Positions 14,845 through 61,636 of a stretch of DNA of 64,000 bases are shown piece after piece; positions within the stretch are counted from its first letter, which is position 1, and each line of letters begins with the position of its first letter. Under the pieces are notes generated by a model that made no database searches, was not told the origin of the DNA, and saw only the letters and a program-made list of their open reading frames with translations. Position numbers and translations under genes: made by a program. Origin of the DNA: Macrostomum lignano (Eukaryota); the NCBI GenBank assembly GCA_002269645.1, contig NIVC01003606.1, positions 24,453 to 88,452 on the forward strand, given 5' to 3'.

Positions 14845-16580
14845 GTGTGACTCACTAACTTTGGGAGTAACTCACAAAGTTTGAAAGTGACTCACCAAGT
14901 TTGAGAGTGACTCACCAAGTTTGAGAGTGACTCACCCAGTTTGAGAGTGACTCACCCAGTTTGAGAGTGACTCACCCAGTTTGAGAGTGACTCACCCAGT
15001 TTGAGAGTGACTCACCCAGTTTGAGAGTGACTCACCCAGTTTGAGAGTGACTCACCCAGTTTGAGAGTGACTCACCAAGTTTGAGAGTGACTCACCCAGT
15101 TTGAGAGTGACTCACCCAGTTTGGGAGTGACTCACCCAGTTTGAGAGTGACTCACTAAGTTTGGGAGTGACTCACTAAGTTTGAGAGTGACTGACCCAGT
15201 TTGAGAGTGACTCACCTAGTTTGAGAGTGACTCACTAAGTTTGGGAGTGACTCACCCAGTTTGAGAGTGACTCACCCAGTTTGAGAGTGACTCACCCAGT
15301 TTGAGAGTGACTCACCCAGTTTGAGAGTGACTCACTAAGTTTGAGAGTGACTCACCCAGTTTGAGAGTGACTCACCAAGTTTGAGAGTGACTCACCCAGT
15401 TTGAGAGTGACTCACCCAGTTTGGGAGTGACTCACCCAGTTTGAGAGTGACTCACTAAGTTTGAGAGTGACTCACCCAGTTTGAGAGTGACTCACCCAGT
15501 TTGAGAGTGACTCACCCAGTTTGAGAGTGACTCACCTAGTTTGGGAGTGACTCACTAAGTTTGGGAGTGACTCACCCAGTTTGAGAGTGACTCACCAAGT
15601 TTGAGAGTGACTCACCCAGTTTGAGAGTGACTCACCAAGTTTGAGAGTGACTCACTAAGTTTGAGAGTGACTCACCCAGTTTGAGAGTGACTCACCCAGT
15701 TTGAGAGTGACTCACCCAGTTTGAGAGTGACTCACCCAGTTTGAGAGTGACTCACTAAGTTTGGGAGTGACTCACTAAGTTTGAGAGTGACTCACCCAGT
15801 TTGAGAGTGACTCACCTAGTTTGAGAGTGACTCACTAAGTTTGGGAGTGACTCACCCAGTTTGAGAGTGACTCACCCAGTTTGAGAGTGACTCACCCAGT
15901 TTGAGAGTGACTCACCCAGTTTGAGAGTGACTCACCAAGTTTGAGAGTGACTCACCCAGTTTGAGAGTGACTCACCAAGTTTGAGAGTGACTCACCCAGT
16001 TTGAGAGTGACTCACCCAGTTTGGGAGTGACTCACCCAGTTTGAGAGTGACTCACTAAGTTTGAGAGTGACTCACCCAGTTTGAGAGTGACTCACCCAGT
16101 TTGAGAGTGACTCACCCATTTTGAGAGTGACTCACCTAGTTTGGGAGTGACTCACTAAGTTTGGGAGTGACTCACCCAGTTTGAGAGTGACTCACCAAGT
16201 TTGAGAGTGACTCACCCAGTTTGAGAGTGACTCACCAAGTTTGAGAGTGACTCACCCAGTTTGAGAGTGACTCACCCAGTTTGAGAGTGACTCACCCAGT
16301 TTGGGAGTGACTCACCAAGTTTGAGAGTGACTCACCCAGTTTGAGAGTGACTCACTAAGTTTGAAAGTGACTCACCAAGTTTGAGAGTGACTCATAAAGT
16401 TTCAGAGTGACTCACTAAGTTTGGGAGTAACTCACAAAGTTAGAAAGTGACTCACCAAGTTTGAGAGTGACTCACCAAGTTTGAGAGTGACTCACCCAGT
16501 TTGAGAGTGACTCACCCAGTTTGAGAGTGACTCACCCAGTTTGAGAATGACTCACTAAGCTTGAGAGTGACTCATTCTCA
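14845..16580. repeat. 20-bp minisatellite (GAGTGACTCACCCAGTTTGA)n, intergenic
   Basis: About 85 units; nearly all contain TGACTCA. Confidence 0.98.
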
Positions 16581-17712: not shown

Positions 17713-24862
<7,150 letters not shown>

Positions 24863-28381: not shown

Positions 28382-28528
28382 ATGCACTGCAGCAGCTGGG
28401 CGGCTCTGCTGCGGATGGTCGGCTGCTGCATCTGCCTGCCTCTGCTCACCAGCTGTGCCGACTACTCTTGTGAGTTTCTGTTGGTCTGCGTGTCTGTCTG
28501 TCCGTCTGTCTGTCTGCCTGTTCTGTCT

Positions 28529-28591
<63 letters not shown>

Positions 28592-28642
28592 TAGTGTCTG
28601 TCTGTCTGTCTATCTGTTTGTCTGTCTGTCTGTCCGTCTTAG

Positions 28643-28704
<62 letters not shown>

Positions 28705-31700
28705 CCTGTCCTGTCTGTCTGTCTGTCTGTGGGCCTGTCTGCTAGTGCCTGTTTCCATGGTAACAAGCTAAGCTCCGCTCACCCGCAGACTCCAGCAGTC
28801 GCTATGTCAAACTACCTCTAGCCGCGCTGAGACAGCAACCATGGCAAAGTTTAAATGCAGATGAAAGCATTAAAAGCGTAAGCGGCACTCTCTGCCGACA
28901 CTTTGCAGCCACATCACATCGCAGTCAAAGTGCTTTATACTTTTTTCTCATGGTAGTTCTACCGTCGGACTGGCAGCTGAACGATGTGCAGATCAAGAGT
29001 GAGTGCACACTGTCTTCTGCGCCCTTTATTCCTAGAGCCGTCTCACTCCCTCCCAATAGGCACCCCTCATTCCTTCAGCCTCCTCACTCCCCCCAAATGG
29101 ACACCCCTCATTCCTACAGCCTCACTCCCCCCAAATGGACACCCCTCATTCCTACAGCCTCCTCACTCCCCCCAAATAGACGCCCCTCATTCCTACAGCC
29201 TCCTCACTCCCCTCAAATAGACGCCCCTCATTCCTACAGCCTCCTCACTCCCCCCAAATAGGCACCCCTCATTCCTACAGCCTCCTCACTCCCCCCAAAT
29301 GGACACCCCTCATTCCTACAGCCTCACTCCCCGCAAATGGACACCCCTCATTCCTACAGCCTCCTCACTCCCCCCAAATGGACACCCCTCATTCCTACAG
29401 CCTCCTCACTCCCCCCAAATAGACGCCCCTCATTCCTACAGCCTCCTCACTCCCCCAAATGGACACCCCTCATTCCTACAGCCTCCTCACTCCCCCCAAA
29501 TAGGCACCCCTTATTCCTACAGCCTCCTCACTCCCCCAAATGGACACCCCTCATTCCTACAGCCTCACTCCCCGCAAATGGACACCCCTCATTCCTACAG
29601 CCTCCTCACTCCCCCCAAATGGACACCCCTCATTCCTACAGCCTCCTCACTCCCCCCCAATAGACGCCCCTCATTCCTACAGCCTCACTCCCCCCAAATG
29701 GACACCCCTCATTCCTACAGCCTCACTCCCCGCAAATGGACACCCCTCATTCCTACAGCCTCCTCACTCCCCCCAAATAGACGCCCCTCATTCCTACAGC
29801 CTCCTCACTCCCCCCAAATGGACACCCCTCATTCCTACAGCCTCCTCACTCCCCCCAAATGGATACCCCTCATTCCTACAGCCTCACTCCCCGCAAATGG
29901 ACACCCCTCATTCCTACAGCCTCCTCACTCCCCCCAAATGGACACCCCTCATTCCTACAGCCTCCTCACTCCCCCCAAATAGACGCCCCTCATTCCTACA
30001 GCCTCACTCCCCCCAAATGGACACCCCTCATTCCTACAGCCTCCTCACTCCCCCAAATGGACACCCCTCATTCCTACAGCCTCCTCACTCCCCCCAATAG
30101 ACGCCCCTCATTCCTACAGCCTCACTCCCCCAAATGGACACCCCTCATTCCTACAGCCTCACTCCCCGCAAATGGACACCCCTCATTCCTACAGCCTCCT
30201 CACTCCCCCCAAATGGACACCCCTCATTCCTACAGCCTCACTCCCCCCAAATGGACACCCCTCATTGGACACCCCTCATTCCTACAGCCTCCTCACTCCC
30301 CCCAAATAGACGCCCATCATTCCTACAGCCTCCTCACTCCCCTCAAATAGACGCCCCTCATTCCTACAGCCTCCTCACTCCCCCCAAATAGGCACCCCTC
30401 ATTCCTACAGCCTCCTCACTCCCCCCAAATGGACACCCCTCATTCCTACAGCCTCACTCCCCGCAAATGGACACCCCTCATTCCTACAGCCTCCTCACTC
30501 CCCCCAAAATGGACACCCCTCATTCCTGCAGCCTCCTCACTCCCCCCAAATAGACGCCCCTCATTCCTACAGCCTCCTCACTCCACCCAAATGGACACCC
30601 CTCATTCCTACAGCCTCCTCACTCCCCCCAAATAGACGCCCCTCATTCCTACAGCCTCCTCACTCCCCCCAAATGGACACCCCTCATTCCTACAGCCTCC
30701 TCACTCCCCCCAAATGGACACCCCTCATTCCTACAGCCTCACTCCCCCAAATGGACACCCCTCATTCCTACAGCCTCCTCACTCCCCCCAAATAGACGCC
30801 CCTCATTCCTACAGCCTCCTCACTCCCCTCAAATAGACGCCCCTCATTCCTACAGCCTCCTCACTCCCCCCAAATAGGCACCCCTCATTCCTACAGCCTC
30901 CTCACTCCCCCCAAATGGACACCCCTCATTCCTACAGCCTCACTCCCCGCAAATGGACACCCCTCATTCCTACAGCCTCCTCACTCCCCCCAAATGGACA
31001 CCCCTCATTCCTACAGCCTCCTCACTCCCCCCAAATAGACGCCCCTCATTCCTACAGCCTCCTCACTCCCCCCAAATGGACACCCCTCATTCCTACAGCC
31101 TCCTCACTCCCCCCAAATAGGCACCCCTTATTCCTACAGCCTCCTCACTCCCCCCAAATGGACACCCCTCATTCCTACAGCCTCACTCCCCGCAAATGGA
31201 CACCCCTCATTCCTACAGCCTCCTCACTCCCCCCAAATGGACACCCCTCATTCCTACAGCCTCCTCACTCCCCCCCCCCCAATAGACGCCCCTCATTCCT
31301 ACAGCCTCACTCCCCCCAAATGGACACCCCTCATTCCTACAGCCTCACTCCCCGCAAATGGACACCCCTCATTCCTACAGCCTCCTCACTCCCCCCCCAA
31401 ATAGACGCCCCTCATTCCTACAGCCTCCTCACTCCCCCCAAATGGACACCCCTCATTCCTACAGCCTCCTCACTCCCCCCAAATAGACGCCCCTCATTCC
31501 TACAGCCTCCTCACTCCCCCAAATGGACACCCCTCATTCCTACAGCCTCCTCACTCCCCCCAAATAGGCACCCCTTATTCCTACAGCCTCCTCACTCCCC
31601 CAAAATGGACACCCCTCATTCCTACAGCCTCACTCCCCGCAAATGGACACCCCTCATTCCTACAGCCTCCTCACTCCCCCAAATGGACACCCCTCATTCC

Positions 31701-34700
31701 TACAGCCTCCTCACTCCCCCCCAATAGACGCCCCTCATTCCTACAGCCTCACTCCCCCCAAATGGACACCCCTCATTCCTACAGCCTCACTCCCCGCAAA
31801 TGGACACCCCTCATTCCTACAGCCTCCTCACTCCCCCAAATGGACACCCCTCATTCCTACAGCCTCACTCCCCCCAAATGGACACCCCTCATTCCTACAG
31901 CCTCCTCACTCCCCCCAAATAGACGCCCCTCATTCCTACAGCCTCCTCACTCCCCTCAAATAGACGCCCCTCATTCCTACAGCCTCCTCACTCCCCCAAA
32001 TAGGCACCCCTCATTCCTACAGCCTCCTCACTCCCCCCAAATGGACACCCCTCATTCCTACAGCCTCACTCCCCGCAAATGGACACCCCTCATTCCTACA
32101 GCCTCCTCACTCCCCCCAAAATGGACACCCCTCATTCCTACAGCCTCCTCACTCCCCCCAAATGGACACCCCTCATTCCTACAGCCTCCTCACTCCCCCC
32201 AAATAGACGCCCCTCATTCCTACAGCCTCCTCACTCCCCCCAAATGGACACCCCTCATTCCTACAGCCTCCTCACTCCCCCCAAATAGGCACCCCTTATT
32301 CCTACAGCCTCCTCACTCCCCCGAAATGGACACCCCTCATTCCTACAGCCTCACTCCCCGCAAATGGACACCCCTCATTCCTACAGCCTCCTCACTCCCC
32401 CCAAATGGACACCCCTCATTCCTACAGCCTCCTTACTCCCCCCCAATAGACGCCCCTCATTCCTACAGCCTCACTCCCCCCAAATGGACACCCCTCATTC
32501 CTACAGCCTCACTCCCCGCAAATGGACACCCCTCATTCCTACAGCCTCCTCACTCCCCCCAAATGGACACCCCTCATTCCTACAGCCTCACTCCCCCCAA
32601 ATGGACACCCCTCATTCCTACAGCCTCCTCACTCCCCCAAATAGACGCCCCTCATTCCTACAGCCTCCTCACTCCCCTCAAATAGACGCCCCTCATTCCT
32701 ACAGCCTCCTCACTCCCCCCAAATAGGCACCCCTCATTCCTACAGCCTCCTCACTCCCCCAAATGGACACCCCTCATTCCTACAGCCTCACTCCCCGCAA
32801 ATGGACACCCCTCATTCCTACAGCCTCCTCACTCCCCCAAATGGACACCCCTCATTCCTACAGCCTCCTCACTCCCCCCAAATAGACGCCCCTCATTCCT
32901 ACAGCCTCCTCACTCCCCCCAAATGGACACCCCTCATTCCTACAGCCTCCTCACTCCCCCCAAATAGACGCCCCTCATTCCTACAGCCTCCTCACTCCCC
33001 CAAATGGACACCCCTCATTCCTACAGCCTCCTCACTCCCCCAAATGGACACCCCTCATTCCTACAGCCTCACTCCCCGCAAATGGACACCCCTCATTCCT
33101 ACAGCCTCCTCACTCCCCCCAAATGGACACCCCTCATTCCTACAGCCTCCTCACTCCCCCCCAATAGACGCCCCTCATTCCTACAGCCTCACTCCCCCCA
33201 AATGGACACCCCTCATTCCTACAGCCTCACTCCCCGCAAATGGACACCCCTCATTCCTACAGCCTCCTCACTCCCCCCAAATGGACACCCCTCATTCCTA
33301 CAGCCTCACTCCCCCCAAATGGACACCCCTCATTCCTACAGCCTCCTCACTCCCCCCAAATAGACGCCCCTCATTCCTACAGCCTCCTCACTCCCCCCAA
33401 ATAGGCACCCCTCATTCCTACAGCCTCCTCACTCCCCCCAAATGGACACCCCTCATTCCTACAGCCTCACTCCCCGCAAATGGACACCCCTCATTCCTAC
33501 AGCCTCCTCACTCCCCCAAAATGGACACCCCTCATTCCTACAGCCTCCTCACTCCCCCCAAATAGACGCCCCTCATTCCTACAGCCTCCTCACTCCCCCC
33601 AAATGGACACCCCTCATTCCTACAGCCTCACTCCCCGCAAATGGACACCCCTCATTCCTACAGCCTCCTCACTCCCCCCAAATGGACACCCCTCATTCCT
33701 ACAGCCTCCTCACTCCCCCCAAATAGGCACCCCTTATTCCTACAGCCTCCTCACTCCCCCGAAATGGACACCCCTCATTCCTACAGCCTCACTCCCCGAA
33801 AATGGACACCCCTCATTCCTACAGCCTCCTCACTCCCCCCAAATGGACACCCCTCATTCCTACAGCCTCCTTACTCCCCCCCCCAATAGACGCCCCTCAT
33901 TCCTACAGCCTCACTCCCCCCAAATGGACACCCCTCATTCCTACAGCCTCACTCCCCGCAAATGGACACCCCTCATTCCTACAGCCTCCTCACTCCCCCC
34001 AAATGGACACCCCTCATTCCTACAGCCTCACTCCCCCAAATGGACACCCCTCATTCCTACAGCCTCCTCACTCCCCCCAAATAGACGCCCCTCATTCCTA
34101 CAGCCTCCTCACTCCCCTCAAATAGACGCCCCTCATTCCTACAGCCTCCTCACTCCCCCCAAATAGGCACCCCTCATTCCTACAGCCTCCTCACTCCCCC
34201 AAATGGACACCCCTCATTCCTACAGCCTCACTCCCCGCAAATGGACACCCCTCATTCCTACAGCCTCCTCACTCCCCCAAATGGACACCCCTCATTCCTA
34301 CAGCCTCCTCACTCCCCCAAATAGACGCCCCTCATTCCTACAGCCTCCTCACTCCCCCCAAATGGACACCCCTCATTCCTACAGCCTCCTCACTCCCCCA
34401 AATAGACGCCCCTCATTCCTACAGCCTCCTCACTCCCCCAAATGGACACCCCTCATTCCTACAGCCTCCTCACTCCCCCAAATAGGCACCCCTTATTCCT
34501 ACAGCCTCCTCACTCCCCCCAAATGGACACCCCTCATTCCTACAGCCTCACTCCCCGCAAATGGACACCCCTCATTCCTACAGCCTCCTCACTCCCCCCA
34601 AATGGACACCCCTCATTCCTACAGCCTCCTCACTCCCCCCAAATAGACGCCCCTCATTCCTACAGCCTCACTCCCCGCAAATGGACACCCCTCTTTCCTA

Positions 34701-37522
34701 AAGTCTCACTCCCTATAGACACCCTCATTTCTACAGCCTCCCCACTCCTTCCTAATGGAGACCCCGCATTCCTACAGCCTCCCCAGTCCTTCCTAATGGA
34801 GAACCCTCATTCCTACAGCCTCCCCAGTCTTTCCTAATGGAGACCCCTCATTCCTACAGCCTCCTCAGTCCTTCCTAATGGAGACCCCTCATTCCTACAG
34901 CCTCACTGTCAACCTCAGCTACTCCCTGTTGTTGATTTCAGTGACTGAACCGCCCAAAGGAAGTATTGATGCAATGGCAGCCATGACAGCCAGAATGACA
35001 GATGAGCTGTCTGGGAAACTCGGACAAGGCTGCAGCTGCCCCAGAGAGGTGCTACCGCAAAGCAACCGAACCCACAGCTGGTTTCCCGCGGAGCCGAACG
35101 GATCGCCGTGGGTTCGCATGCAGACGTGGTTCAGCTTGGATCGGCGCACATTTCGAGCGTCCGTCCAGCGGGTGTGGCTCTTTTGCTTGCCATTTTTAGC
35201 AATTTTTACGCGACTACTTACAGTAGCTGTATCCTATTTTTTATTCCGGACATTTTCAGCTCGAACAGATGAGTCACGTGATCATGGTATTCCACAACGA
35301 TCCGGAAATAGAGGAAGCTGTTTTCGGATTTTTAGTCAACAAGCCCTTGAAGGGTTGGTCAACTTTTTTGACGATATCTTTTGATTGATTAACTTGCATA
35401 GAGAAAAAGTCACTTAACTGATCCTCAATCAACAATCAATTTAGGTATTGAAATCTTCACTGGCGTGATGTCGGCTCTGGCTGTGTGCTTCTCGCTGACC
35501 ATCATGGTTATGACGGCCACCTACCTGCGCAGCACAGCAGTCTCCAAATCTGTGAGCTAGCGAATTTGACACAGATATATCTAATAGGGGAATTAGACTG
35601 ATTGGGTCATGGAATCTAAAAGACGTGTTGTTTTTCACGTGTTGTTTGTCTGTCTGTGTGTGTCTAAGGATTAGAACAATCTTTAAGGGTATTCGCAAGG
35701 CTGGGTTAGAAATACTGAAGTCGGAGATTTGGTGATGGGGAATTAGGGAGGCTGGTCGGAAAATCTGTGATGGGGAATTAGGGAGGCTGGATTGGAGAAT
35801 CAGTGATGGGGAATTAGAGAGGCCTGGATCGGAGAATCAGTTATGGTGAATCAGGGAGGCTGGATTGGAGAATCAGTGAAGGGGAATTAGGGAGGCTGGA
35901 TTGGAGAATCAGTGAAGGGGAATCAGGGAGGCTGGATTGGAAAATCAGTGATGGGGAATTAGGGAGGCTGGATTGGAGAATCAGTGATGGGGAATCGGCT
36001 AGTTGTAATAGTCAATTTCTATAGTGAATTATTTCAATGACAATTGTCAAAGTAAAGTTCAAAGTTTGAACCCTCGAACAATACGCATGCACCGCAACAG
36101 TGCTCGGGAGACCGATCGGGCGGACCCAACTCGCGGTGCCTGAACTCCTACTGCGATACGGGCAGAGAGCGAGAGCAATTCCCGCCGGACACAGGGATCT
36201 ACATGGGCTGAAATTCTGTGCTGCGCCACCACTATAGACACTTGGGCCCGAACGCACCAGGACAATGTACATGTCACTGGCCTGGTACTGACTAAGCAAT
36301 ATATTTTGCTCAAAGTTTACTCCAGAATGAACATATACATGATCTCCTGTTTATTGTGTCTAATTTTTCTAAAACACTTGCCGCTGAGTAGAATAATAAC
36401 TTGCAAATTCAGTAATTTTTCAGTAATCCTTTTCACTGCGCTTATCAAATAAACGGTGCATCATTTTTCAGTGACTCAACGTCAAAAATGCTCTGACTTC
36501 GGGCTCATATATGCTCTGACTTGGGGCTCATGCTCTGACTTGGGGCTCATACATGCTCTGACTTGGGGCTCATGCTCTGACTTGGGGCTCACACAAGCTC
36601 CGACTTGGGGCTCATATATGCTCTAATTTGGGGCTGATATATCCTCTGACTTGGGGCTCATATATGCTGACTGAGGGCTCATATATCCTCTGCTTGGGCT
36701 CATATATGCTCTGCTTGAGGCTCATAGATGCTGACTTGGGGCTCATATATCCTCTGCTTGGGGCTCATATGCTCAGACCTGGGGCTCATATATGCTGACT
36801 TAGGGCTCATATATCCTCTGCTTGGGGCTCATATATGCTCTGCTTGAGGCTCATAGATGCTGACTTGGGGCTCATATATCCTCTGCTTGAGGCTCATATA
36901 TCGTCTGACTTGGGGCTCATATATGCTCTAATTTATGGGTCATAGATGCTCTGACTTGGGGCTCATATATGCTCTAATTTATGGGTCATAGATGCTCTGA
37001 CTTGGGGCTCATATATGCTCTGACTTGGGGCTCATACGGGGCTCTCGATTTTTCAGAAACATTAACCAAGAAAATATGGCGTTTGAAAAGGCATGATTTA
37101 GGCTACTGATGAACAAAGCGACTTTAATTATCTGAGCTGTTCCATCTCTGAGCACTAATTGCCCCATTGGTTCCCCAGGGATTGCTAAAAATCATTCAGG
37201 AACTCAAGAAATCGCTGGCTGTTTTCAGCTAAGAGTAAGTTAAAACTGAATGCAGATTCAAAGTGTTTCGAAAGGGCTGAACTGCCTTTCCAACCAAGTC
37301 TTAATGGTCAATGATGGAACTGCCACGCAGCATCAAAGTGAATTGTTGACCAAAGAGCTGTTGAGAAGCCCTGCTCAGCAGCATCAATCAATCTCTTTGA
37401 CGGCAAGAGTCCCTCGGGGTCGGCCACTGGACAGTGGGCAAATTCTGCATAAAATGGCGAGTGGTTCGACCTCGCCCCCATTGCGTCAACTGCCACAACT
37501 TGACAGGGCCTTCTCAATCTAA
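28382..37522 (+). CDS. Putative uncharacterised type I membrane protein (signal peptide, about 120-aa ectodomain with NRT/NGS sequons, one TM helix, cytoplasmic tail)
   Basis: Exons 28382-28469, 28957-28998, 34942-35171, 35260-35353, 35445-35551 join in frame through GT-AG sites (donors GTGAGT, GTGAGT, GTGTGG, GTTGGT, GTGAGC). [27 protein letters not shown]. Last exon 37256-37522 is tentative (weak acceptor); otherwise the ORF stops at 35560. Confidence 0.62.
28485..28742. repeat. (CTGT)n microsatellite
   Basis: Direct reading. Confidence 0.96.
28751..28764. promoter_or_regulatory. Perfect RFX X-box GTTTCCATGGTAAC
   Basis: Exact match to GTTNCCATGGNAAC; lies in intron 1 of the putative membrane-protein gene. 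Confidence 0.6.
29035..34905. repeat. About 37-41-bp C-rich minisatellite (CCCTCATTCCTACAGCCTCCTCACTCCCCCCAAATGGACAC), about 5.9 kb
   Basis: About 150 units with recurring variant order; fills the intron 28999-34941. Confidence 0.98.
35730..36000. repeat. About 36-bp tandem repeat (GATGGGGAATTAGGGAGGCTGGATTGGAGAATCAGT)
   Basis: About 7 units. Confidence 0.9.
36490..37040. repeat. About 21-23-bp degenerate minisatellite (GCTCTGACTTGGGGCTCATATAT)
   Basis: About 24 units. Confidence 0.92.
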
Positions 37523-38152
37523 CAGGTGAGAAGAACTCAGCTCTTGTGTCAATCAATTTACTAAGCCATGCAGCATTTTGTAGGCCATGAAACTCAATGG
37601 AAGCAGTCGCTTTTCACCCAACTCAAAACACTGTTATAATTGAATCGGCGCGTTGGTCTCATTCGCGATTCTGTATACCAGCAGTCCAAAACCCGCTGCC
37701 GACACTGTCGATGCCATCTGAGCCCCGGCTGCTGTCCGTTGGGACCTTGCCGGACTGGGTGGGGCGCTCAATGCTCTTGGAGTCTAGCAGGGGAGTTGCT
37801 GAACTGCTCAGGTGGCTCAAGAGCCGATAGCGCCTCAAACTGATGCAATTAATACTAGGGTGCCCCATGCTAGCCCCAAAAATGCCGCAGCTGCAGACAA
37901 GGGCACTGAATTATTCACAATCACAAGCTGGTAGCTTATAAAGTCCACAAGGAAAGCGAGTCGAAGAGGCACCGACCGACCGCTCGCAACCAACCGATCG
38001 ACAGAGAAGCCATAGCCAGCCTTACCTCAGCTAGTCCATTGTTCGACAAAATTAATCGGGGAAAAAGGTAGAACAAAACCCATCGGCCGAATCTTTTTAT
38101 CAACAATCTTGCATAATAATCACCCAACCCTGCAGGATCCAAACTTGAAGCC

Positions 38153-38510
38153 ATGCAGCCAGTCAGCGCTATCGCCATCTGCACCTTGTGCTTCCTGGTG
38201 GCCGCCACCTCCGCGGGGCTCGGGGCCGCCCAGGCCGAGGCCGGCAGCAGCGACTGCCGCCTTTCGCCAAGGGAGCTGAGCCGCACCGTGACGTCGCTCT
38301 ACCGCAACTTCCTTATCTACCTGGAGGCGCAGGGTGAGACGGCCCTGGAGCTCGGTGGCCCGGTGAAACGCGGCCCAGCCAAGCGCAAAGACAAATACGT
38401 GTGGAGGTGAGCCAGCCGCGTTGATGAATGCACCAATTTTAAGACAATCCTGAGCACAACTGATCAAAGCAAACCAACTGCCTACTTTCCTACATAACTT
38501 CAGGCTTTGA
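38153..38510 (+). CDS. Putative secreted peptide (prohormone-like) precursor, about 86 aa
   Basis: Acceptor TGCAG| at 38135, start context GAAGCCATG, signal peptide MQPVSAIAICTLCFLVAATSA, dibasic KR sites in GPVKRGPAKRKDKYVWR. Donor AG|GTGAGC at 38406/7 and acceptor TTCAG| at 38503 give ..YVWRL* (unspliced: ..YVWR* at 38410). Confidence 0.7.
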
Positions 38511-39949
38511 AACTCCGAGCAGCACACAAGGGAAGCAAGGAACCTCGGACCGGCAGCGAAGTCACTGATATCTATATCTGTGCCGCTTTGACTGACTGAC
38601 AACACATTTTGCTTTGATAATAAAACAGTTTTTAGGAAAAAATACAAAAGCAAATCGCAACAAAGCTGCCCCTTAAAAGCCGATTATTGACATTAAAAAT
38701 TGAGAAAAAAGGTTCGCTCTGAGCCTAACACAATAAGCTGGTAGTAGTTGAAGGCCGGCCCTGTAAATATATTGGTTTCAACGTAACACTTACAGTACAG
38801 TTACAGTAATATTAATAATAGTAGCAACGATATAATGATTATGAAATTTAAAAAAAAATTTAAACAGAAAAGTCGATTAGACGCAAAAGTGGCAAAACTG
38901 AACACAGCAAATAAAGGAGGCTTGGAGAAGAGTGGGGGGGTCGCAAAAAACTGGAAGTAGAGAAGCAAATACACAGCAAAAAAGGTACCAAAAAGGTCGA
39001 ATAAAGGTACAAATACAAACAAGCATATATATAGTCTGTCAGAGGCGACAATAATACGACACCTGGGGGAAAAAGGTTGCTAGAAAATTGTTTAACAAAC
39101 GGAAAGCCACTAAGGAGAGGAGAAAAAACACAATGTGATAGCTAGATTGAGTTAATGGCTAGGATTCTGTGTCGATGTAAACTCGGGCCAATTCAATTAA
39201 TCATTTAATAGTTAAAGCAATAAAAAACACAGAGAACGCAAAAAGCAAGGATTGCAAGAGAGATTTAATTTTTATGGATCAAGTTTCAAATACAAGCAAA
39301 ACTAAATCCAGCGTATGGTCATAGGCGACAGAGATTTCAAATAGACCGGAATGAACTGAAGCCCTCAGCTCTTTGATAGTGTAATTATTAATAAATAATT
39401 AACAACAAAAAATAACGCTTCAAATTGCACACTTCTTATCCCGCAAAGCAGACACTAACAGAACTGGTTGGCGGAGCCTTTGTAAAAAATGAAGACAAAA
39501 ATGAACGGCTTAGCACAGGACTTGTTAGTATTTAGAACATTAATGCAAAAAACTGCACAACTGAATAGATATGTAGACGTGTGTGTGTGTGTGTGTGTTC
39601 ATGTGTGCAAACAAATATAATAAATTAATAATAATACATAAAAACAGCTGTACCTACCTACTAGTGCAAGTAGGAAATGGAGTTTATTGCCGTTATCCTC
39701 TAACTATCTATATCCACTGCGAGAGGCAGGAGAGGAGGGGCAGATTGGCGGTTTAGCGGGCTCCGTACTTTATAAAAGCAGCAACAAAAAGTGTATCAGA
39801 GCAAAAAAACACAAGAATAGAAAGCGCGACTGTGTGAACTTATCTTTCTTCAAGTAGGTTTACTCACTCAGCGAGTAGATAAACTGAAGGAGGGTACAGT
39901 GCTATTGCCTTTGTCCGCTGAGTCAATAATATAATATTCGCAGGAGGGC

Positions 39950-42351: not shown

Positions 42352-45300
42352 TCAACTAATATAGAGAGTATTGAGCACCAGCACGTGGTGATTATTCTTG
42401 GCCAGGGTCACCACATAGCCCTCGCTAGTGATCTTCAGGCCGCAGCAGCGGGACACTTTCACAGCCGGGCACTCGAACTCGGAGGTGAGCTGTCCGGCCG
42501 AGTTAAACACGGCCACGTGGAACTTGTTGCCATGGGAATCGCCGACTAGCACGTCGCCGTGGTCGCTAATGTCGATGCCGTTAGGAAAATTAGTGATAAC
42601 CTCTGAACCGATGCGTCTAAGGAAGACGCCGTCGTCTTGAAAGACGCAGACGCAGTGGCCTTTGAAATCGCAGATGAAGTACTCGCGGCCCTGGATGGCA
42701 ATGTCGGACGGCTCGCGCATATAGCTGGAGCAGTCGAACCATTTCACCAGGTCGCCAGTGTCGGCGATGACAAACACTGTTGGCGACACGGAGTCCACAG
42801 CCACGATGTGCTGCTGACTGTTGATGGCCAGTCCGGCCACAATGTCGATGTATCGGACGGTGATCTTGCGCAGGAATTGGCCGGTCTTGCTGAACAGCTG
42901 CATCCGGCTGCGCTCGCTGCCGCGGTCGCAGACAACGAATCTGGAGGACTGGCGCATCACAGCCACCTTGCGCGGATACCACAGCTGGCCCTCCTCGCGG
43001 CCGGCGATGCCGAACTGGGACTTGTGCTCGCCGGACTTGTCGAATATCTGCAGTAGTTTAGGGATTCCGGATCGGCACTCAGGGATATGTTAGTTGCTAG
43101 GGGGATTTTTTGGATGGTTAGTTGCTTGGGGCGATTGTTGGGGTGCGTTTTAGTTGCTAGGGCGATTGTTGGGGTGGATTTTAGTTGCTAGGGCGATTGT
43201 TGGGGTGGATTTTAGTTGCTAGGGCGATTGATGGGATGTATTAGTTGCTACGGGACTTTTCTAAAGAATCAGCTTGCTAGGGCGGTTGTTTGCGGTGCAC
43301 TTGTTGGCGGGAAGATATTTTGAGTCGATTAGTTGCTGCGGGGTGCCTACAGTATTTAGTTGCTATGACGATTTTAGGATTGGATTAGTAATCATAACTA
43401 ACGCAGCCCCACCTGAATGCGATGATTTTGAGTGTCGGCCACAACAATGTCCTCCTCAGGGCCGAGGCAGAAGCCGTGCGGCGAGTTGAACTGGCCAATT
43501 GCGGAGCCCAGCGAGCCCCATCGATGCCGCACAGTCATGGGAATGCACCGGCCAGTCCGGAAGGCCCCGGCAGCCGAGGCCACCGACGACTTCGGATTCT
43601 GCTGAGTAGGCGACGCGGAGCCCGGCGCCCCGCCGCCAACAATACTGCCAGCGCCGCTACTGCCGGCGCCACCACCGGCGCCGACGCCGACAAGCGAAGC
43701 AAAGTCGAACTGTTGCTGCATGACATCTAGCTGAAGCTTGCCAACTCCGCCCAGTACGGAGCTGAGCAGCGGCTCGGAGCCAATGCTGACGCCGCTGTCG
43801 GAGCCAGGCGCGCCCGGGCTGGGCTGGGAGGGCAGGCCGAACAGGGCCGGGTTGTTGCCGGTGGCGTACGTCACTGGCGGACCGGCCGGTGCCGGCTCCG
43901 GCTTGATGGCGAAGGCGGACGCCTGCGGTGCAAACAGAGAGGGGATCGATTGGAGCTGGCTGACACACGCCAAAACAGCATCTCTGTGAACTTCCTAATT
44001 TAGATGTCCACAGTGCTGCGGATAGTATCCGGGTATTTTAGACACGGTGGCATTCTGGGTATTTTTGACACGGTGGCATTCTGGGTATTCTAGACACGGT
44101 AGCATTGGGGGTATGTCAGACACGGTAGCATTGGGGGTATTTTAGACACGGTAGCATTGGGGTATTTCAGACACGGTAGCATTGGGGTATTTCAGACACG
44201 GTAGCATTGGGGGTATTTTAGACACGGTAGCATTGGGGTATTTTAGACACGGTAGCATTGGGGTATTTCAGACACGGTAGCATTGGGGTATGTCAGACAC
44301 GGTAGCATTCTGGGTATTTTAGACACGGTAGCATTGGGGGTATGTCAGACACAGTAGCATTGGGGTATTTCAGACACGGTAGCATTGGGGTATTTCAGAC
44401 ACGGTAGCATTGGGGGTATTTTAGACACGGTAGCATTGGGGTATTTTAGACACGGTAGCATTGGGGTATTTCAGACACGGTAGCATTGGGGTATGTCAGA
44501 CACGGTAGCATTCTGTGTATTTTAGACACGGTAGCATTGGGGGTATGTCAGACACGGTAGCATTGGGGTATTTCAGACACGGTAGCATTGGGGGTATTTC
44601 AGACACGGTAGCATTGGGGTATTTCAGACACGGTAGCATTGGGGGTATTTCAGACACGGTAGCATTGGGGGTATTTTAGACACGGTAGCATTGGGGTATT
44701 TCAGACACGGTAGCATTCTGGGTATTTCAGACACGGTAGCATTGGGGTATTTCAGACACGGTAGCATTCTGGGTATTTTAGACACGGTAGCATTGGGGTA
44801 TTTTAGACACGGTAGCATTCTGGGTATTTTTGACACGGTGGCATTGGGGGTATTTTAGACACGGTAGCATTCTGGGTATTTTAGACACGGTAGCATTCTG
44901 GGTATTTTAGACACGGTAGCATTCTGGGTATTTTAGACACGGTAGAATTCTGGGTACTTTAGACACGGTAGCATTCTGGGTATTTTAGACACGGTAGCAT
45001 TCTGGGTATTTCAGACACGGTAGCATTGGGGGTATTTCAGACACTGTAGCATTCTGGGTATTTTAGACACTGTAGCATTCTGGGTATTTCAGACACGGTA
45101 GCATTGGGGGTATTTCAGACACGGTAGCATTCTGGGTACTTTAGACACGGTAGCATTCTGGGTATTTCAGACACGGTAGCATTCTGGGTATTTCAGACAC
45201 GGTAGCATTGGGAGTATTTCAGACACGGTAGCATTCTGGGTATTTTAGACACGGTAGCATTCTGGGTATTTTAGACACGGTAGCATTCTGGGTATTTCAG

Positions 45301-47671
45301 ACACGGTAGCATTGGGAGTATTTCAAACACGGTAGCATTGGGGGTATTTCAGACACGGTAGCATTGGGAGTATTTTAGACACGGTAGCATTGGGGGTATT
45401 TCAGACACGGTAGCATTGGGGTATTTCAGACACGGTAGCATTGGGAGTATTTTAGACACGGTAGCATTGGGGGTATTTCAGACACGGTACTTCAGTTTTC
45501 CACACCTGCTGCAAATCGCCAGAAGCGGCTTCGCCAAGCGCGGCGGCAACAGCGGCCGCATTGACCGGCATGCCGGATGCGGCCGCGGCGGCAGCAGCGG
45601 CGGCGGCGGCAGACACCGCGGCATTGGCTGGTACAGCAGTCGTAGTGGGCGTGGGCGGGCCGCCGGGCGTTACAAAGCGACCAAAATTCGATAGCACGAG
45701 ACTGCGAAACTCGGCGTGATTGGCTTTGAACGGCACCGAGGCCGGCAGGTCGGTGTCCCAGTGGCTGCGCATGAGTGTGGCCGCCCAGTCCCTGAGCACC
45801 TTGGCTGCGTAGGCGGCGCAAACAGGGCCGGCGCGATCGCTGTAAGCTCGGACGAAAGCGGCCGCCTCGGACATCTGGTCGGCGCCCTTGGCAACGGCGT
45901 CTAGCTGTTCCATGACTCGCATCTCCAGATCGCTGTGCAGTTTGCGATTTTCTTCTAACAGACGATTTCCAGCCTCTTCGATGAAGGCCTTGTAGGAGGC
46001 CAGGGCCTCGCGAATGGCGCCCTCGTTGTGCTGTCGGCTGTCCTCGATCTCGGTGAGGCGCTCCTGCGAGCGGGGAGAGATAAGTTACTTGGGATTTACT
46101 AATACGATCCAATTAACAGTACGAAACATGGAAATTTGCACCTGGGAAGGGGGTAGTCATATGAGGATCTGGATGACAAAGTAACTTCAGGATCTGGGAG
46201 TCGGGAGGAGATATTAGATTAACTTAAGAATATAAAGATGGCGGATTAACCTGAGGATCTGGGACTGGGAGATGGCGGATTAACCTGAGGATCTGGGACT
46301 GGGAGATGGCGGATTAACCTGAGGATCTGGGACTGGGAGATGGCGGATTAACCTGAGGATCTGGGACTGGGAGATGGCGGATTAACCTGAGGATCTGGGA
46401 CTGGGAGATGGCAGATTATAATAATGATTTGTAGTGAGGTAGGCAGCCGGTTAACCGTGAGAACATGAGAAACAGGTTTTATAACTCAGATACTGTATTT
46501 AAGTGGTTGGCAACTAGCTCACCTGCATTTTGACGTGCTCAATTTGCCATTTACGCTGGCAATCGCGCAGCTTCTTAGCGTCGTCGGCCAGAGCGGCAAC
46601 GAGCCGCCGGCCGGCTGACAGGGCCGGTTCCACCCGGTGCAGCTTGTGGCCGGTAGCCACGCATTCGGCGCAGTGCAGGCCGGCACAGTCGTGACAGTAG
46701 TAGCGAGTCCGTTCGGCCGGATGCTCGGCGCAGCTCAGCTGGGCGCCAACCTGGTCGGCGTCGTCATCATCGTCGGCAGCTCCTTGGTCGTCGTTGTCAC
46801 CGTTGCTGGCCTCGGCGTTGCCGTTGCTGCCGCCTGCGGAGGCGAGGTCGCGGACCCGGTGCCTGCTGAACATCTTCATGACGGAGTGCGCCTGCCGGCA
46901 GGCCTGACACAAGTAGTCGGCGCATTCGCGGCATCTGGCAACCGCTTCGGCTCCGGTTGTGCAGCCGCCGCAGCGAGGCTGCTCCGCCTTTGGCGCGGCT
47001 TCCTGTGGTTGTAGGTCCAAAGGGGTGTTTCTTCGGGATTTCGAGGGGATATATGGGATCTGGGAGGATATGGGGATGTCGAGGGGATATATGGGATCTG
47101 GGAGGATATGGGGATGTCGAGGGGATACAGGGGATCAGGGAGAATATGGGGGGAGGGGTTTGAGCGAATCTGGGACGATGTGAGCATTTCTTATGGCCAA
47201 ACTCACCCGCATGTACAGATGGTCGCGAGTCAGGCCAGCCAATCCCAGATTGGCATCCAACACAGTGGGGGTGTGGCATTTCGGACAGAAAAGTACAAGA
47301 TCGGCCAGCCCAGTGCGGCTGGCCTGCAGGCAGGGCAGATCAAAGCGGTGCAGGCAGGCCAGGAACACCGGCTCGGTGAGAGGCCGCTGGCACAGGCTGC
47401 AGTCGCCAGCCAGAGAGGCGGCCTTGGCTACCGCAGCCTCTTGCTGGCTAACCGCATCGTCTCCATCAAGACAGCAATTGCCGAATGTCTCCAGCAGACC
47501 GGCGGCCTCAGCTGCGTCATCCTCTTCGTCAGATTTATTGTTGCCATTGCCGATATTGAAGTGGCGGCCAGTCAGCTGATTATATTCCTCATTGTTACCG
47601 AGCAGCAGCTGGGAGCCCGGGCTGCTCTGCTCCAAGATGTCATCGTAGGCGTGGGTCATCTCGTCCGACAT
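42352..47671 (-). CDS. brat: Brain tumor (brat/NCL-1)-type TRIM-NHL protein: RING-like, two B-boxes, coiled coil, NHL repeats; 902 aa
   Basis: Exons (minus): 47671-47207, 47002-46523, 46063-45506, 43922-43413, 43047-42352, all phase 0 and open. NHL motifs [85 protein letters not shown] match recalled Brat. Confidence 0.94.
43095..43330. repeat. About 30-bp degenerate repeat (TTAGTTGCTAGGGCGATTGTTGGGGTGGAT) in brat intron 4
   Basis: About 6 units. Confidence 0.85.
44030..45490. repeat. 24-25-bp minisatellite (AGACACGGTAGCATTGGGGTATTT)n in brat intron 3
   Basis: About 58 units. Confidence 0.97.
46240..46415. repeat. About 34-bp tandem repeat (GGCGGATTAACCTGAGGATCTGGGACTGGGAGAT) in brat intron 2
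   Basis: 4-5 perfect units. Confidence 0.93.
47035..47150. repeat. About 38-bp short tandem repeat in brat intron 1
   Basis: GGGATCTGGGAGGATATGGGGATGTCGAGGGGATATAT, about 2.5 copies. Confidence 0.8.
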
Positions 47672-56304: not shown

Positions 56305-59300
56305 TGGTGACTATTGAGCTGCTGCCCGAGCAGAGCTGGGACGTCAACTTAGCCTTCTGCAGAGAGGACGAGCGCCCCCGGACCAAGAGGCATCCAATCT
56401 GGGTTCCGGCCAGGAGCGTCGTTACCTCTGCTGACGAGCTCCGGAAAGGACTGCTAGCAGTCAACCGGGAGCTTCCCGCCGCGGGCCTAGTGGTGCATGA
56501 CACCCTTAAGCGCACCGACAGCACTGGCTTCACAGCCATCCTGGGGCTGTCGGACGCCTGGATGAGGCGCTATCCGCACGGCAGCTTCATCAACGTCGGC
56601 CTTTGGAAGCTGCGCATCCGCTCCTACGAGGCCGACCCTCCCCGTGGCAGTGAGCAGGGCGGGGGGGATACGGAGGCGACCGGGGCAGGCGCGAGCTTTT
56701 GCCCAGGCTGCCAAAGCACGGCCGCGCGGGTAAAGCTGAGCGCGCTGCTGAGGGCGGAGGCGACCGACGCCCGGCGCGCAGCACCAAGCGGCGCGGCCTG
56801 TACCAGCGCGCAGCTGAGGCTGTCCGCACCGCTAAAGTCACCCAGCTGAGGAGAGAGGTCGCCGGGACGCCTAGGCGCACCAGTTCGTCCAGGGAGGGTG
56901 GGGACGTCCCAGCTGGGCCCAACCCATCGGGGCAGGGCCAACTGGAGACGGACCCGCCTGCCCAGGCGGCTGGCTGCTCCAGGGCATTGGGCCAGTCTGA
57001 AGCGGAGGACCCCGTGGCCGGTGGGCGAAGGGCGGCGAACGCTGCCTATTGCCTTCCGACCAATCGGGGGCCTTTTGCTGAAGAGGAGCCCATGGACACC
57101 GGCGACCCCGACCCGAAGCTGGTGAGCGCCGAGGAGGAGGAGGAACTCCTGGCGTCTGCAACACCCGATCTGCAATGATGCCAGCGGCTACCTGGTGTCT
57201 GCAGATCAACACCCAGCACTGCGTGGCGGTGTCAGTCAACCTGATGCGCACGACAGAGCAACAGCTTCCGGGCCTGGTCTTCGTGCAGGAGCCCTGGATG
57301 ACTAAAGGTAAGCCAAATAATGTGCCATCTGGCTACCACTGTTTTTGCATGGCGGACTCTCAGCCTCGCCCAAGATCTCTGGTCTTCGCTGCAAAAGCTT
57401 TTGAGGCATGTATGAGACCTGATCTCTCGACTGGGGACATCTGTGTTGTTCAAATCAAAAACCTCATTCCCAATAAACCTGTGCTGGTAGCATCTGCCTA
57501 TTTCCCAGGCGATGCCCCAGTAGTCTGCGACGCACTAGTCAACCTCATTGACTACGCCGAGTCCCGTCGGTTTGAGCTGCTCATTGCAGGGGATGTGAAC
57601 GCACACCACCTGCATGGGGCAGCAGGAACACCAATAACAGAGGCGAGGAGCTGCTGGCATATGTCAGCAGCACTGACCTCAACTTCCGTAACGTGGGCAA
57701 TGCACCAACGTTCAATAATGGGCGGTGAGCCGAAGTCATCGACACCACCATCGCCTCACCCGGACTGCTTTCCGCAGTTACGGGCTGGCGAGTGTGGGAC
57801 GAGGACTCGCTCTCGGACCACCGCTTTATCCGCTTTTGCATTGGGCTGACCAAACAAAAGCCTAAGGTCACTTGGAGTCGGAACGTCAGAAATACCGATT
57901 GGGCCGCCTTTGGCTCGAAGCTGAGCCGAGGCCTTCGGGATCTTGACCCCCCCCCCCCAGTGACCTATCTGACTGCCAGGTGGTGGATGATCTTGCCTCC
58001 TCCCTGGGCGGGGCGATCACCACTGACTTTGAAGCAGCATGCCCTCTAGAAGCCTACAAAGGCAAGAAATCTGCTCCCTGGTGGAACCCAGAGCTCGGGT
58101 CCCTTCGGCGCCGAACCAGGACCCTCCAAAGGCGAGCGCTCAAAACCAAAGACCCATCTGATAGAGAGGCCTATACCCGTGCGATCCACGAGTTTAAGGG
58201 CCAAGTTAAAAGGGCCAAGACGGCCAAGTGGCGCCAATATTGCGAAGGGCTGGAGGGCTCCCGCCCCGTAGCCCGCGTGGTTAAGGCACTCACTAATGAC
58301 CGTTTTTCTAAACTCTCTGTTGTGAAGAGACCTGATGGCTCGGTCACAGAGAGATCTGAAGAGACTCTAGAGCTAATACTCAACAGTTTCTTCCCTAAAT
58401 CTCCGACTCAGCAGGGCCAAGGCGAAAGCAGGGCCCCCTGCTCTCAGGCGAAAGCAGGGCCCGCCTGACCAAACCATGGGAGGGCAAGACCTAGCAAAGT
58501 CTATGATCACCAAAGACCGCATTATTAGAGCGGCAAGGTCCTTTAACCCGTTCAAGGCCCGATAGCATCTACCCAGCGTTCTTGCACGAGGCGGTAAAAT
58601 ACCACCGCTTCCTGGACCTCCTCTGTCGTCTCCTCCGAGCTTGTGTGGAGCTGGGCTATGTACCAGTTGCGTGGAGAGAGGCCTTGGGTGGTCTTTATCC
58701 CCAAGCCTGGAAAGAGCGACTACCAATCGGTGAAGGCCTTCAGGCCTATCAGCCTCACCTCCTTCTGCCTTAAGCTCCTCGAGAGACTGGTGCTTTGGCG
58801 CCTACTTTCGGTCGAGCTGAAGCGCTTCCCACTCTCGCAGAACCAGCACGCTTTCCGCGCGGGCAGGTCTACCGAGAGTGCCCTCCATGTCATTGTTGAC
58901 TTCCTGGAGAGGGCCGTTCTTGGCAGCGGTTTTGCCCTCTCGCTTTTCCTGGACATTGAGGGGGCCTTCGACAACGTCATCTTCGAGGCCTTTTGCAGAG
59001 CCCTGGAATCCAGGGCCACGCACCCTCGCCTTGTCCGGTGGATCATGTTCATGATCCGGAACCGCACTGTTGTGGCCCACCTGAACGGCAGCTCTCTTTC
59101 GGCGCCTGTCCAGAAAGGGGGCCCCCAGGGCGGAGTTCTCACCCCCGTTCTCTGGAACATGGTCATGGATGAGTTGCTTTGCAGTGATCTCCACGACCCC
59201 ATTCTCAAGGTGGGCTATGGCGACGATGTGACCACGATATGTGCGGGCCCCTCGGTTGATACCATCAGAGACCTTCTGCAGGGCTTTCTGGGACGAGCGG

Positions 59301-60150
59301 AGCGTTGGGCAAACCAATGTGGCCTTAGACTCTCAGAGTCGAAAACCACAGCGGTCATGTTTACCAACAAACTGCTCTGTACCATTAGGCGCCTCACCCT
59401 CTATGGAAAGGATATTTCCATGGAGAAGCAGGTCCGCTGCCTGGGCCTCACTCTGGACCACAGGCTTAACTGGACTCCGCACATCAAACTAAAGCTAAAA
59501 AAGCCCTGGCTGTCCTGGCTCAGATCAGGCGCGCCGTAGGCACCACCTGGGGGCTCACCCCCAGGAAGCTGTGGTGGATTTACACTGCCATCATCCGCCC
59601 CTCGGTCAGTTACGCCAGCCTCGTGTGGGCCAGCGGCCTGAGCGTCAAAAGCAACCTCGACGCTCTTTTACAAAATCCAGGGCAGAACTTGCCGCATGAC
59701 TCTGGGCGCTCCACCCTCTACTCCTTTTGAAGGCAAGAATGCCTTCCTCTGTGCCCCTCCTCTGGATATTTATATCAAAGGAGGTGGCGAAGAGCACCCG
59801 GCGTCTTCTAGATGCTGGGGTGGCCTTCAAGAAAGTGCGGGCCTTTAAGAAGCAGTCGCTTTTCCCGCACTCTGACCTCTGCCTCAAGGCTCTCGAGGAG
59901 TGTGGCGGGCTCAAAATCTCACGGACTCGATCCCAGCCACCCTTCTCCTGAGCCAAAGGTATAAGGTCACTATTCAGCCTCGACACGAGGCGAGTGACAG
60001 CTGGAGCGATTCTGAATTCCACTGTTACACTGACGGCTCTATGAGGCATTGTCTTTCAGGCTTCGGAGCTTGCGTCTTCTTCAAGGGAGAAGTGGTGTGG
60101 AGCTACTCCCAGCACACTGGGCTCAACTCAAGTGTTTTTCAGAGCGAGGT
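56305..60150 (+). mobile_element. Non-LTR retrotransposon (R1/LOA-like): partial ORF1 plus frameshifted ORF2 (APE-RT-RNase H), truncated at both ends
   Basis: APE: LQINTQH, VQEPW, AGDVNAHH, SDHRFIRF. RT: FRPISLTSF, QHAFRAGRSTESAL, FLDIEGAFDNV, PQGGVLTP, YGDD. RNase H: YTDGS..SVFQSEV. Several frameshifts. Confidence 0.92.
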
Positions 60151-60202
60151 GTGCTCCCCCAAAAGTAGAAAAACAAAATACAAAAAAAACCAAGACCAAT
60201 CC

Positions 60203-61636
60203 TTAGACCTTATAACAAACAGGTTTACGAGGCCGCAAATCATACGAGCTGTGGGGCTGGAAAGTCTCATCTCCAGAACTCAGCCGGGAGTCACAGTCAG
60301 TCACCTCAGGTTCACGCAGCTCCGAGTCAGAGCCAGCCTTGGCACCCAGATGAATCGATAGCCCAGCCTGATCCTCGGATCCAGCCGCCTCGGTCAGCCG
60401 CCGATCAGCCTCCGCCTCCGGGCGGCAGCTCCATTGGTTTGCGTGCGCCATCCGCAGTCCACCATCTGGTAGGTCAGCTGAGGTCACCAGAGCTGTGTTC
60501 CGGCCGTGCTGCACGATGAACTTGGCCGGAACCGGAGCCGTGCCAGGCCGAGCCCTCAGCCAGATGGAGTCACCCACCTGCTCGGTAATCGTTAGCGGAT
60601 GGCGCAGCCGGCGTCCCCACATGAGAATGTCCGGCGAACTGGAACGATTCCCGCTAGGCCTGCTGGTGCGAATGGTTAGAAGCAAATTCTGCAGGAACTG
60701 GTCAAATGGGAACACTTTCGTCCACGTCTTCAGCCCGCCTTTGAGACTCCTCACCAACCGCTCAGCCTGCCCGTTCGATGCCGGATGGTACGGTGGGGTG
60801 TGCATCTCCTGGCAGCCGACACTGTTCAGCCACTGCGAGACTCTTTCCGACCTGAACTCAGGCGCATTATCCGACACTAGCGTCCGAGGCACTCCATTTC
60901 CGGCGAACACCGCTCTCCGCACTCTCAGCACACTGCCCGCAGACCTGTCTGGGACCTGGACAGCTTCTGGCCAACCCGAGTATGCATCAGACAGCAACAG
61001 TAGCAAGCCCACTCCTGGCACCTCACAGTGGTCCATGTGGACCCAGGACCACGGCTCGCTCTCGGATGGCCAGATGTCAATTTTCCGCTGAACCACCGGC
61101 CGTCTTTCAGCGCACAGCTGACACCGCTCAACAAACTGACGGACATCGCGATACAGTCCAGGCCACCAGAACTCCTTCGACACATGGGCCTTCGTATTTT
61201 CCGCGCTCGGGTGCGCCTCATCATGCGCGGTCTCCAAAATGCGCCGCCGGAGAATGATCGGAGGCACCACCCTGGTACCGTGGATGACCAGCCCGTTTTC
61301 CACAGACAACGCTTCCCGACACGCTTTGTACGGCCGCTCCAGCTGAGAGACCTGACCCCACCGGCCTGTCCTGATTCTCTGCTGGAGTCTTTGAAGCAGT
61401 GAACACCGGGAAGTACTTTCTCTCAGCTCCTCCACGGTAACCAAGCCTCCGTCAGTGATCAACTCAGTCTGGTGAACCGACTCCGTCTCAGGATCGAGGT
61501 TTTCAAAGCTCAGCCTTGATAGAGCGTCAGCATCCTGCATCTTCTTTCCCGGCACATATTCAATCTCGTAATCATAAGCCGATAGCCGCAGAGCCCACCG
61601 GGTTAGTCTGGCAGAAACAGTCTTTGGAAGATTCAT
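60203..61636 (-). pseudogene. Gypsy RNase H C-terminus plus integrase frame
   Basis: RWALRLSAYDYEIEY, HHCC zinc finger (H..H..FWWP..C..C), D..SDNAPEF..SNGQAER. Confidence 0.9.

Follow-up and report, generated by a model that had tools for sequence, protein, structure and literature searches.

A small transcribed gene of Macrostomum lignano encoding a candidate secreted peptide precursor

The locus and its neighbourhood

We analysed a stretch of 64,000 nucleotides from the flatworm Macrostomum lignano, hereafter called the window. The annotated locus on contig NIVC01003606.1 (assembly GCA_002269645.1, Mlig_3_7) corresponds to positions 28153-48510 of the window, with 100% identity. It includes a small gene on the plus strand, whose two coding segments are joined over a 97-nt intron and specify a protein of 86 aa (Table 1). 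This protein is identical to the GenBank entries PAA50579.1 and PAA92904.1, each described as "hypothetical protein" of Macrostomum lignano (BOX15_Mlig007256g2 and Mlig010764g1). The initial annotation had presented the ORF as an unrecognised precursor. No known family was found for it, as detailed below, but it was already deposited in GenBank under this name.

The surroundings of the gene are rich in repeats. Minisatellite arrays are densely distributed over the window, at 29028-34904 and at many other places (e.g., 1-885, 14847-16574, 18776-20055, and 44031-45489). The largest of them, a 41-bp unit repeated approximately 146 times and strongly C-rich on the plus strand, lies inside the span of an annotated 279-aa gene without Pfam domains (28382-36211, plus strand). 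On the other side, a TRIM-NHL or Brat-like gene of 902 aa with B-box and NHL domains occupies positions 42352-47671 of the minus strand. Its last exon (42352-42966) shows 72-78% identity to the NHL domains of arthropod and schistosome Brat/TRIM2-3 proteins, and no match in the protein database was obtained with the ORF (47135-47671) located at the annotated 5' end of this gene. Further along, retrotransposon pol fragments span 58643-62597. They comprise an integrase (H2C2 and rve, 60203-61636) and a reverse transcriptase with RNase H (61572-62597) on the minus strand, and a second reverse-transcriptase ORF on the plus strand (58643-59539).

Table 1. Features of the 86-aa gene and of its predicted product, in window coordinates
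Feature	Position	Strand	Remarks
TATAAA, putative TATA box	37937..37942	+	About 215 nt 5' of the start codon; pattern search
CTGCAG acceptor-like motif	38130..38135	+	38136 (G) is the base directly after
Coding exon 1	38153..38406	+	Codons 1-84 and AG, the first two bases of Arg85; product PAA50579.1 / PAA92904.1
Signal-peptide-like N-terminus, residues 1-28	38153..38236	+	Kyte-Doolittle and -3/-1 rule only
Amphipathic helix, residues 39-59 (PRELSRTVTSLYRNFLIYLEA)	38267..38329	+	AlphaFold2, hydrophobic moment
First dibasic site K72-R73 (AAA CGC)	38366..38371	+	
Second basic site K77-R78-K79 (KRK)	38381..38389	+	R73 is P6
C-terminal peptide KDKYVWRL, codons K79-W84 and two bases of R85	38387..38406	+	
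Intron, 97 nt, phase 2	38407..38503	+	Splits the Arg85 codon; AG/GTGAGC ... TTCAG/G
Last exon, coding part	38504..38510	+	G (third base of Arg85), CTT (Leu86), TGA; 7 nt
AATAAA, putative poly(A) signal	38619..38624	+	109 nt 3' of the stop codon; presumed use

Gene structure and transcript support

Read without splicing, the ORF begins with the ATG at 38153, ends with a TGA at 38408-38410, and specifies 85 aa ending in ...KDKYVWR. Removal of the intron extends it to 86 aa ending in ...KDKYVWRL, with the stop codon at 38508-38510. This intron has GTGAG as its donor and CAG as its acceptor, in agreement with the splice consensus of M. lignano, which is GT[G/A]AG for donors and CAG for acceptors (PMC8629364), and the RNA-based GenBank model carries exactly the 38406/38504 splice. 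The 97-nt intron of the initial annotation is confirmed. Its retention had been said to change only the last residue of the protein; L86 is indeed the only residue affected, but it is deleted rather than changed.

The annotation of Mlig_3_7 has only transcript assemblies as its source, both RNA-seq-guided and de novo, in which ORFs were called by TransDecoder (PMC5730564). Since this annotation is purely RNA-based, both the gene and its intron have transcript support, and we conclude that the 86-aa ORF is a real, transcribed coding gene. The unspliced 85-aa ORF is also embedded, amid largely nonsensical sequence, in residues 613-697 of the UniProt entry A0A1I8HGM9, a protein of 1411 aa called "PBPe domain-containing protein" that was predicted ab initio from an older assembly. 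We regarded this entry as a chimera and disregarded it.

The start codon stands in the context GCCATGC, with an in-frame TAA 36 nt 5' of it. By pattern search, it is the first ATG to follow the TATAAA at 37937; no other is present in the likely 5' UTR. This TATAAA falls in an indel-free block (37753-38653) common to the three genomic copies described below, and it suggests that the 86-aa gene may have a promoter of its own. The initial annotation had placed the beginning of the gene at 38136. This was incorrect, as the coding sequence begins at 38153 and 38136 is the first base after the CTGCAG acceptor-like motif. The sequence CTGCAG/G at 38130-38136 agrees with the motif [T/C]TNCAG of spliced leader (SL) trans-splice acceptors in M. 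lignano (PMC8629364). If this acceptor were used, the ATG found at the 3' end of the SL would not share the frame of the ORF and would open an overlapping, out-of-frame reading frame of 56 codons that belongs to 38109-38279. An operon is not indicated, because the nearest same-strand gene upstream ends about 1.9 kb away.

The GC content of the ORF at the three codon positions is 0.61/0.54/0.86. At the third position (GC3) it resembles the NHL exon, the last one, of the Brat-like gene nearby. Among the 108 ORFs of the window that start with ATG and have at least 70 aa, it is in the top 2% for GC3 and in the top 6% for GC3 excess. For comparison, we considered a long open frame of 177 codons that spans the whole locus on the minus strand (38120-38653) and that could, in principle, encode the true product, with the plus-strand ORF as its shadow. 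The antisense frame starts with TTG, has a flat codon-position GC (0.63/0.49/0.54), lacks Pfam matches, and runs through the plus-strand intron. The splice sites, the TATA box, and the AATAAA are all on the plus strand, which is also where the RNA-based annotation calls the gene. The probability of this alternative is hence negligible, and the antisense ORF is a shadow of the plus-strand gene.

Genomic copies

The gene is present in three near-identical genomic copies, each with an intact ORF. Their coding sequences differ at three positions, two of them synonymous and the other leading to the replacement A64T, in the predicted spacer, in the third copy (Mlig007256g1, PAA62244.1). Substitutions between the copies amount to approximately 1-3% inside and outside the gene alike, and because of this equal similarity the copies give no signal of selection.

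The three copies probably derive from a recent genome duplication. The order of genes in the two other genomic copies is TRAF, the 279-aa gene, the 86-aa gene, and Brat, and the window's own contig (L003) has the last three of them (279-aa, 86-aa, and Brat). The upstream neighbour in that order is a TRAF-type gene of 492 aa, with zf-TRAF and MATH domains, on the minus strand (1-1109 of L001 and 1-170 of L002), at a place that corresponds to the region upstream of window position 28153. This shared gene order is consistent with a segmental or a whole-genome duplication.

Features of the protein

The protein starts with MQPVSAIAICTLCFLVAATSAGLGAAQA, in which a hydrophobic core at residues 4-18 is followed by a c-region of small residues. 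Kyte-Doolittle means over nine residues reach 2.8 across residues 4-16, AlphaFold2 (run with no alignment) places a helix at residues 5-18, and the -3/-1 rule, used here as the sole criterion, points to candidate cleavage sites after TSA21 or AQA28. These heuristics agree with the signal peptide proposed in the initial annotation. The helical pro-region proposed there was also recovered. The same AlphaFold2 model, with a mean pLDDT of 60, contains a single helix of high confidence, at residues 39-59 (pLDDT around 87), and a disordered C-terminal tail. The hydrophobic moment of this helix is 0.55, a value reached by only 0.66% of shuffled sequences.

The C-terminal part of the protein has the two KR sites and the terminal KDKYVWR(L) that had been described, and we confirmed that neither site is preceded by an amidation Gly (the preceding residues are V71 and A76). 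Repeated peptide copies and Cys pairs were not found in the 86-aa protein. Both K72R73 and K77R78 directly precede a short peptide at the C-terminus, an arrangement that is classical for prohormones. However, two or more KR occur in 6.7% of the composition-matched shuffles of the mature region. Hence, the prohormone pattern goes beyond chance only weakly, and the count of KR sites is not significant.

Proprotein convertases follow the general rule (K/R)-Xn-(K/R), where n is 0 or 4. The segment R73-G-P-A-K77-R78 has basic residues at P1, P2, and P6, and therefore also fits the motif of furin-type and general convertases. Since a furin-type motif is usable in any secretory cell, cleavage at this place need not be neural. 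The mature protein taken as a whole is basic, with a pI of 9.65 and a net charge of approximately +4.

Searches for homologues

We searched for relatives of the protein in very large databases. A word search of 5.8 billion proteins returned only the M. lignano cluster, and a full HMMER search of 1.84 billion representative proteins returned the protein itself and two spurious bacterial repeat proteins. Pfam gave no match for the ORF even at E-values up to 10, nor did it for the antisense ORF or for the alternative frame. There was equally no match among PDB sequences at E-values up to 10, no relative in a scan of JGI metagenomes, no second copy within the window by tblastn, and no match to Rfam in the window. 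HMMER detected no planarian protein similar to the 86-aa protein. The lack of homologues applies to annotated flatworm and other proteomes and is not a statement on the congeners of Macrostomum. In particular, no already named precursor was matched in Pfam, the PDB, HMMER, or the word search.

The literature gave a similar picture. Gene identifiers, accessions, and peptide strings had no match in the searchable full-text literature, and were absent from the supplement text of PMC5816591, PMC7336406, PMC5977470, PMC12896417, and PMC5946080. The strings WRL, VWR, and YVW are absent from the study of planarian prohormones and from its supplement text (PMC2953531). We found no M. lignano peptidome or single-cell atlas in the literature searched.

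Such an orphan might be an ORF of recent or de novo origin at a transcribed locus, largely or wholly without function, whose prohormone-like features arose by coincidence. The shortness of the ORF, the lack of homologues among 1.84 billion representative proteins, the absence of a selective signal in copies that differ by 1-3% throughout, and KR sites compatible with chance would all fit. Yet, the third-position GC bias is as strong as in bona fide neighbouring exons, the signal-peptide-like N-terminus is clean, the helix is significantly amphipathic, the ORF is intact in the three copies, and the signals for promoter, splicing, and polyadenylation are in good order. We therefore regard a functionless ORF as unlikely.

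Relation to the NPY/NPF superfamily

The npy genes of flatworms and vertebrates have an intron inside the Arg codon that precedes the last residue of the peptide (PMC2953531). Planarians also have an atypical member, Smed-NPY-11, which ends in ...SRPRL-GKR (PMC2953531). This raises the question of whether the gene belongs to the NPY/NPF superfamily as a highly derived form, akin to NPY-11, that has kept the hallmark intron. The intron of the 86-aa gene does split the Arg85 codon, just ahead of the terminal Leu86, and the helix, with its Tyr/Leu-rich LYRNFLIYL, bears a loose resemblance to the helix RNYLRxL that is found in Smed NPY-8 and NPY-9. Phase-2 introns commonly split AG/G codons, so the position of the intron is weak evidence on its own.

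The other features of the protein contradict such a kinship. It ends in ...YVWRL followed by the stop codon, without RxR[FY], without Gly, and without a dibasic site after the last residue, and the KR sites stand between the helix and the C-terminus. We built an HMM from nine Smed NPY pro-peptides (PMC2953531 supplement) and compared the score of the protein with those of 20,000 of its own shuffles. The score was -1.8 bits, and 46-59% of the shuffles scored equally well or better. Pfam had no match up to an E-value of 10, and neither the PDB nor the large protein searches gave any NPY-family match. Given an HMM score no better than that of shuffles, the missing RxR[FY]-G-KR ending, and the two intervening KR sites, we rejected membership in NPY/NPF, which we consider very improbable. 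FMRFamide-like peptides, MIP/W-amides, and other amidated flatworm families do not match either, as there is no Gly before a basic site and no repeated motif. The earlier remark that the protein could not be matched to NPY/F, FMRFamide, MIP, or other families is thus in line with the searches of Pfam, the Smed-NPY HMM, the PDB, and HMMER.

Proposed secretion and processing of the product

We tentatively favour the explanation that the gene encodes a lineage-restricted, convertase-processed precursor of secreted peptides, of neuronal or endocrine nature, although we hold it with somewhat less than even confidence. M. lignano has a homologue of PC2 (RNA815_2403.2) that is expressed in the nervous system and whose RNAi is lethal in post-embryonic development, after hatching (PMC4490696). 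Given this neural PC2, and because the features used here are the same criteria as those applied to planarian secreted peptide prohormones (spp), the prohormone reading is plausible. We infer the secretion and the cleavage of the 86-aa product, any bioactivity it has, and the type of cell, neuron or endocrine cell, that makes it. The architecture and the orphan status put forward in the initial annotation were upheld, while neuropeptide function stays at the level of a hypothesis. The same applies to the idea of a "new peptide family", which is a hypothesis and not a finding.

The same gene could instead encode a small protein secreted by cells that are not neural, such as those in a gland of the prostate (seminal fluid), of the adhesive organs, of the pharynx, of the rhabdites, or of the epidermis. 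The protein may then act intact through its amphipathic helix and cationic tail (e.g., by binding membranes or matrix, or as an antimicrobial), or it may be cleaved by a furin-type enzyme in the constitutive pathway. The signal peptide, the helix, and the basic tail also fit this explanation, as does the basic character of the whole mature protein (pI 9.65), and the furin/PC motif at R73-G-P-A-K77-R78 requires neither PC2 nor neurons. The KR count, reached by 6.7% of shuffles, is also compatible with it. Fast-evolving proteins of reproduction and of glands are typically orphans, and many putative seminal-fluid transcripts are known in M. lignano (PMC5977470). On the other hand, the gene was not found in the supplement text of the seminal-fluid screen and of a study of reproduction genes, in which other identifiers may have been used and which may be incomplete, and both KR sites adjoin the short C-terminal peptide as in classical prohormones. 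We consider a non-neural origin the main alternative, though less likely than not.

If the product is a processed peptide precursor, as we favour, the small pre-pro-protein would enter the secretory pathway and lose its signal peptide after residue 21 or 28. A subtilisin-like convertase would then cut after K72R73 and K77R78, and a carboxypeptidase would trim the exposed basic residues. Three products would be expected from these steps. The first would be an acidic peptide of 43-50 residues that contains one free Cys in addition to one amphipathic helix, the second the tripeptide GPA, and the third a basic and aromatic, non-amidated octapeptide KDKYVWRL (or DKYVWRL). The helix may serve as a sorting or pro-region element, or as a second ligand.

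The 7-nt coding micro-exon would have a particular role in this scheme, since the Leu86 it adds would cap Arg85. The specificity of carboxypeptidases E and D is well established and is the basis for the predicted trimming of Arg85. The capped KDKYVWRL would resist an enzyme of the carboxypeptidase E type, whereas the intron-retaining mRNA would give a peptide ending in ...VWR that such an enzyme is expected to shorten to ...VW. Hence, the difference between the peptides from the two forms of mRNA would exceed one residue.

One may go further and propose a signalling-peptide family restricted to Macrostomum, in which KDKYVWRL, the helical peptide of 43-50 residues, or both are active, and in which splicing picks between a carboxypeptidase-resistant ...WRL and a trimmed ...VW. 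This elaborate version is quite unlikely as a whole. If true, it would be a case of splice-controlled choice of peptide identity by means of a 7-nt micro-exon.

Among flatworms, M. lignano alone can be made transgenic routinely, and the combination of RNAi and reporters allows direct tests of these proposals. A validated lineage-specific peptide signal would extend the picture drawn from planarians, where many prohormones are without homologues and some control reproduction. If the product turned out to be a gland or seminal-fluid protein instead, the gene would be one more fast-evolving orphan. In either case, the gene stands as a candidate rather than a discovery on the evidence so far.

Comparison with known systems

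In NPY/NPF precursors, as in the 86-aa protein, a signal peptide precedes a peptide of about 40-50 residues whose helix is amphipathic and rich in Tyr, and Smed-NPY-11 shares the intron in the Arg codon before a last residue that is Leu. In contrast, the M. lignano protein has no RPR[FYL]-Gly-Lys-Arg end and no amidation, and its helix lies 27 residues from the C-terminus, beyond two KR sites.

The same layout is found among some other precursors. Prosomatostatin, pro-apelin, and pro-urotensin II each carry an active, non-amidated peptide at their extreme C-terminus, after basic sites. They share with the 86-aa protein the signal peptide, a pro-region with an amphipathic helix, the basic sites, the short C-terminal peptide, and a similar size (77-120 aa). 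The likeness is architectural only, as the M. lignano protein has no Cys ring and no sequence similarity to them.

Within the species, the orphan gland proteins of M. lignano, such as the putative seminal-fluid proteins (PMC5977470), match the 86-aa protein, here predicted to be secreted, in being short, secreted, species-restricted, and devoid of domains. A tail made of two KR sites and a terminal peptide is not a described feature of theirs.

A parallel is found in planarians. In Schmidtea mediterranea, a search based on signal peptides and dibasic sites found 51 prohormone genes, including 19 spp genes without homology (PMC2953531). Around 45% of the predicted peptides were confirmed by mass spectrometry (MS), around 85% of the genes showed expression in the CNS, and some of the classes are non-amidated (PMC2953531). 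While Smed-spp-1 to -19 were validated by MS and in situ hybridization, the 86-aa gene is known from its sequence and from transcript-based annotation. It has in common with them (Collins et al. 2010, PMC2953531) that the products are small pre-pro-proteins with a signal peptide and dibasic sites and without homology to a named family. Some Smed-spp also yield non-amidated peptides, and the spp depend on PC2 (PMC2953531). We therefore place the 86-aa gene, as an unvalidated candidate, among the known lineage-restricted precursors of secretory peptides in flatworms.
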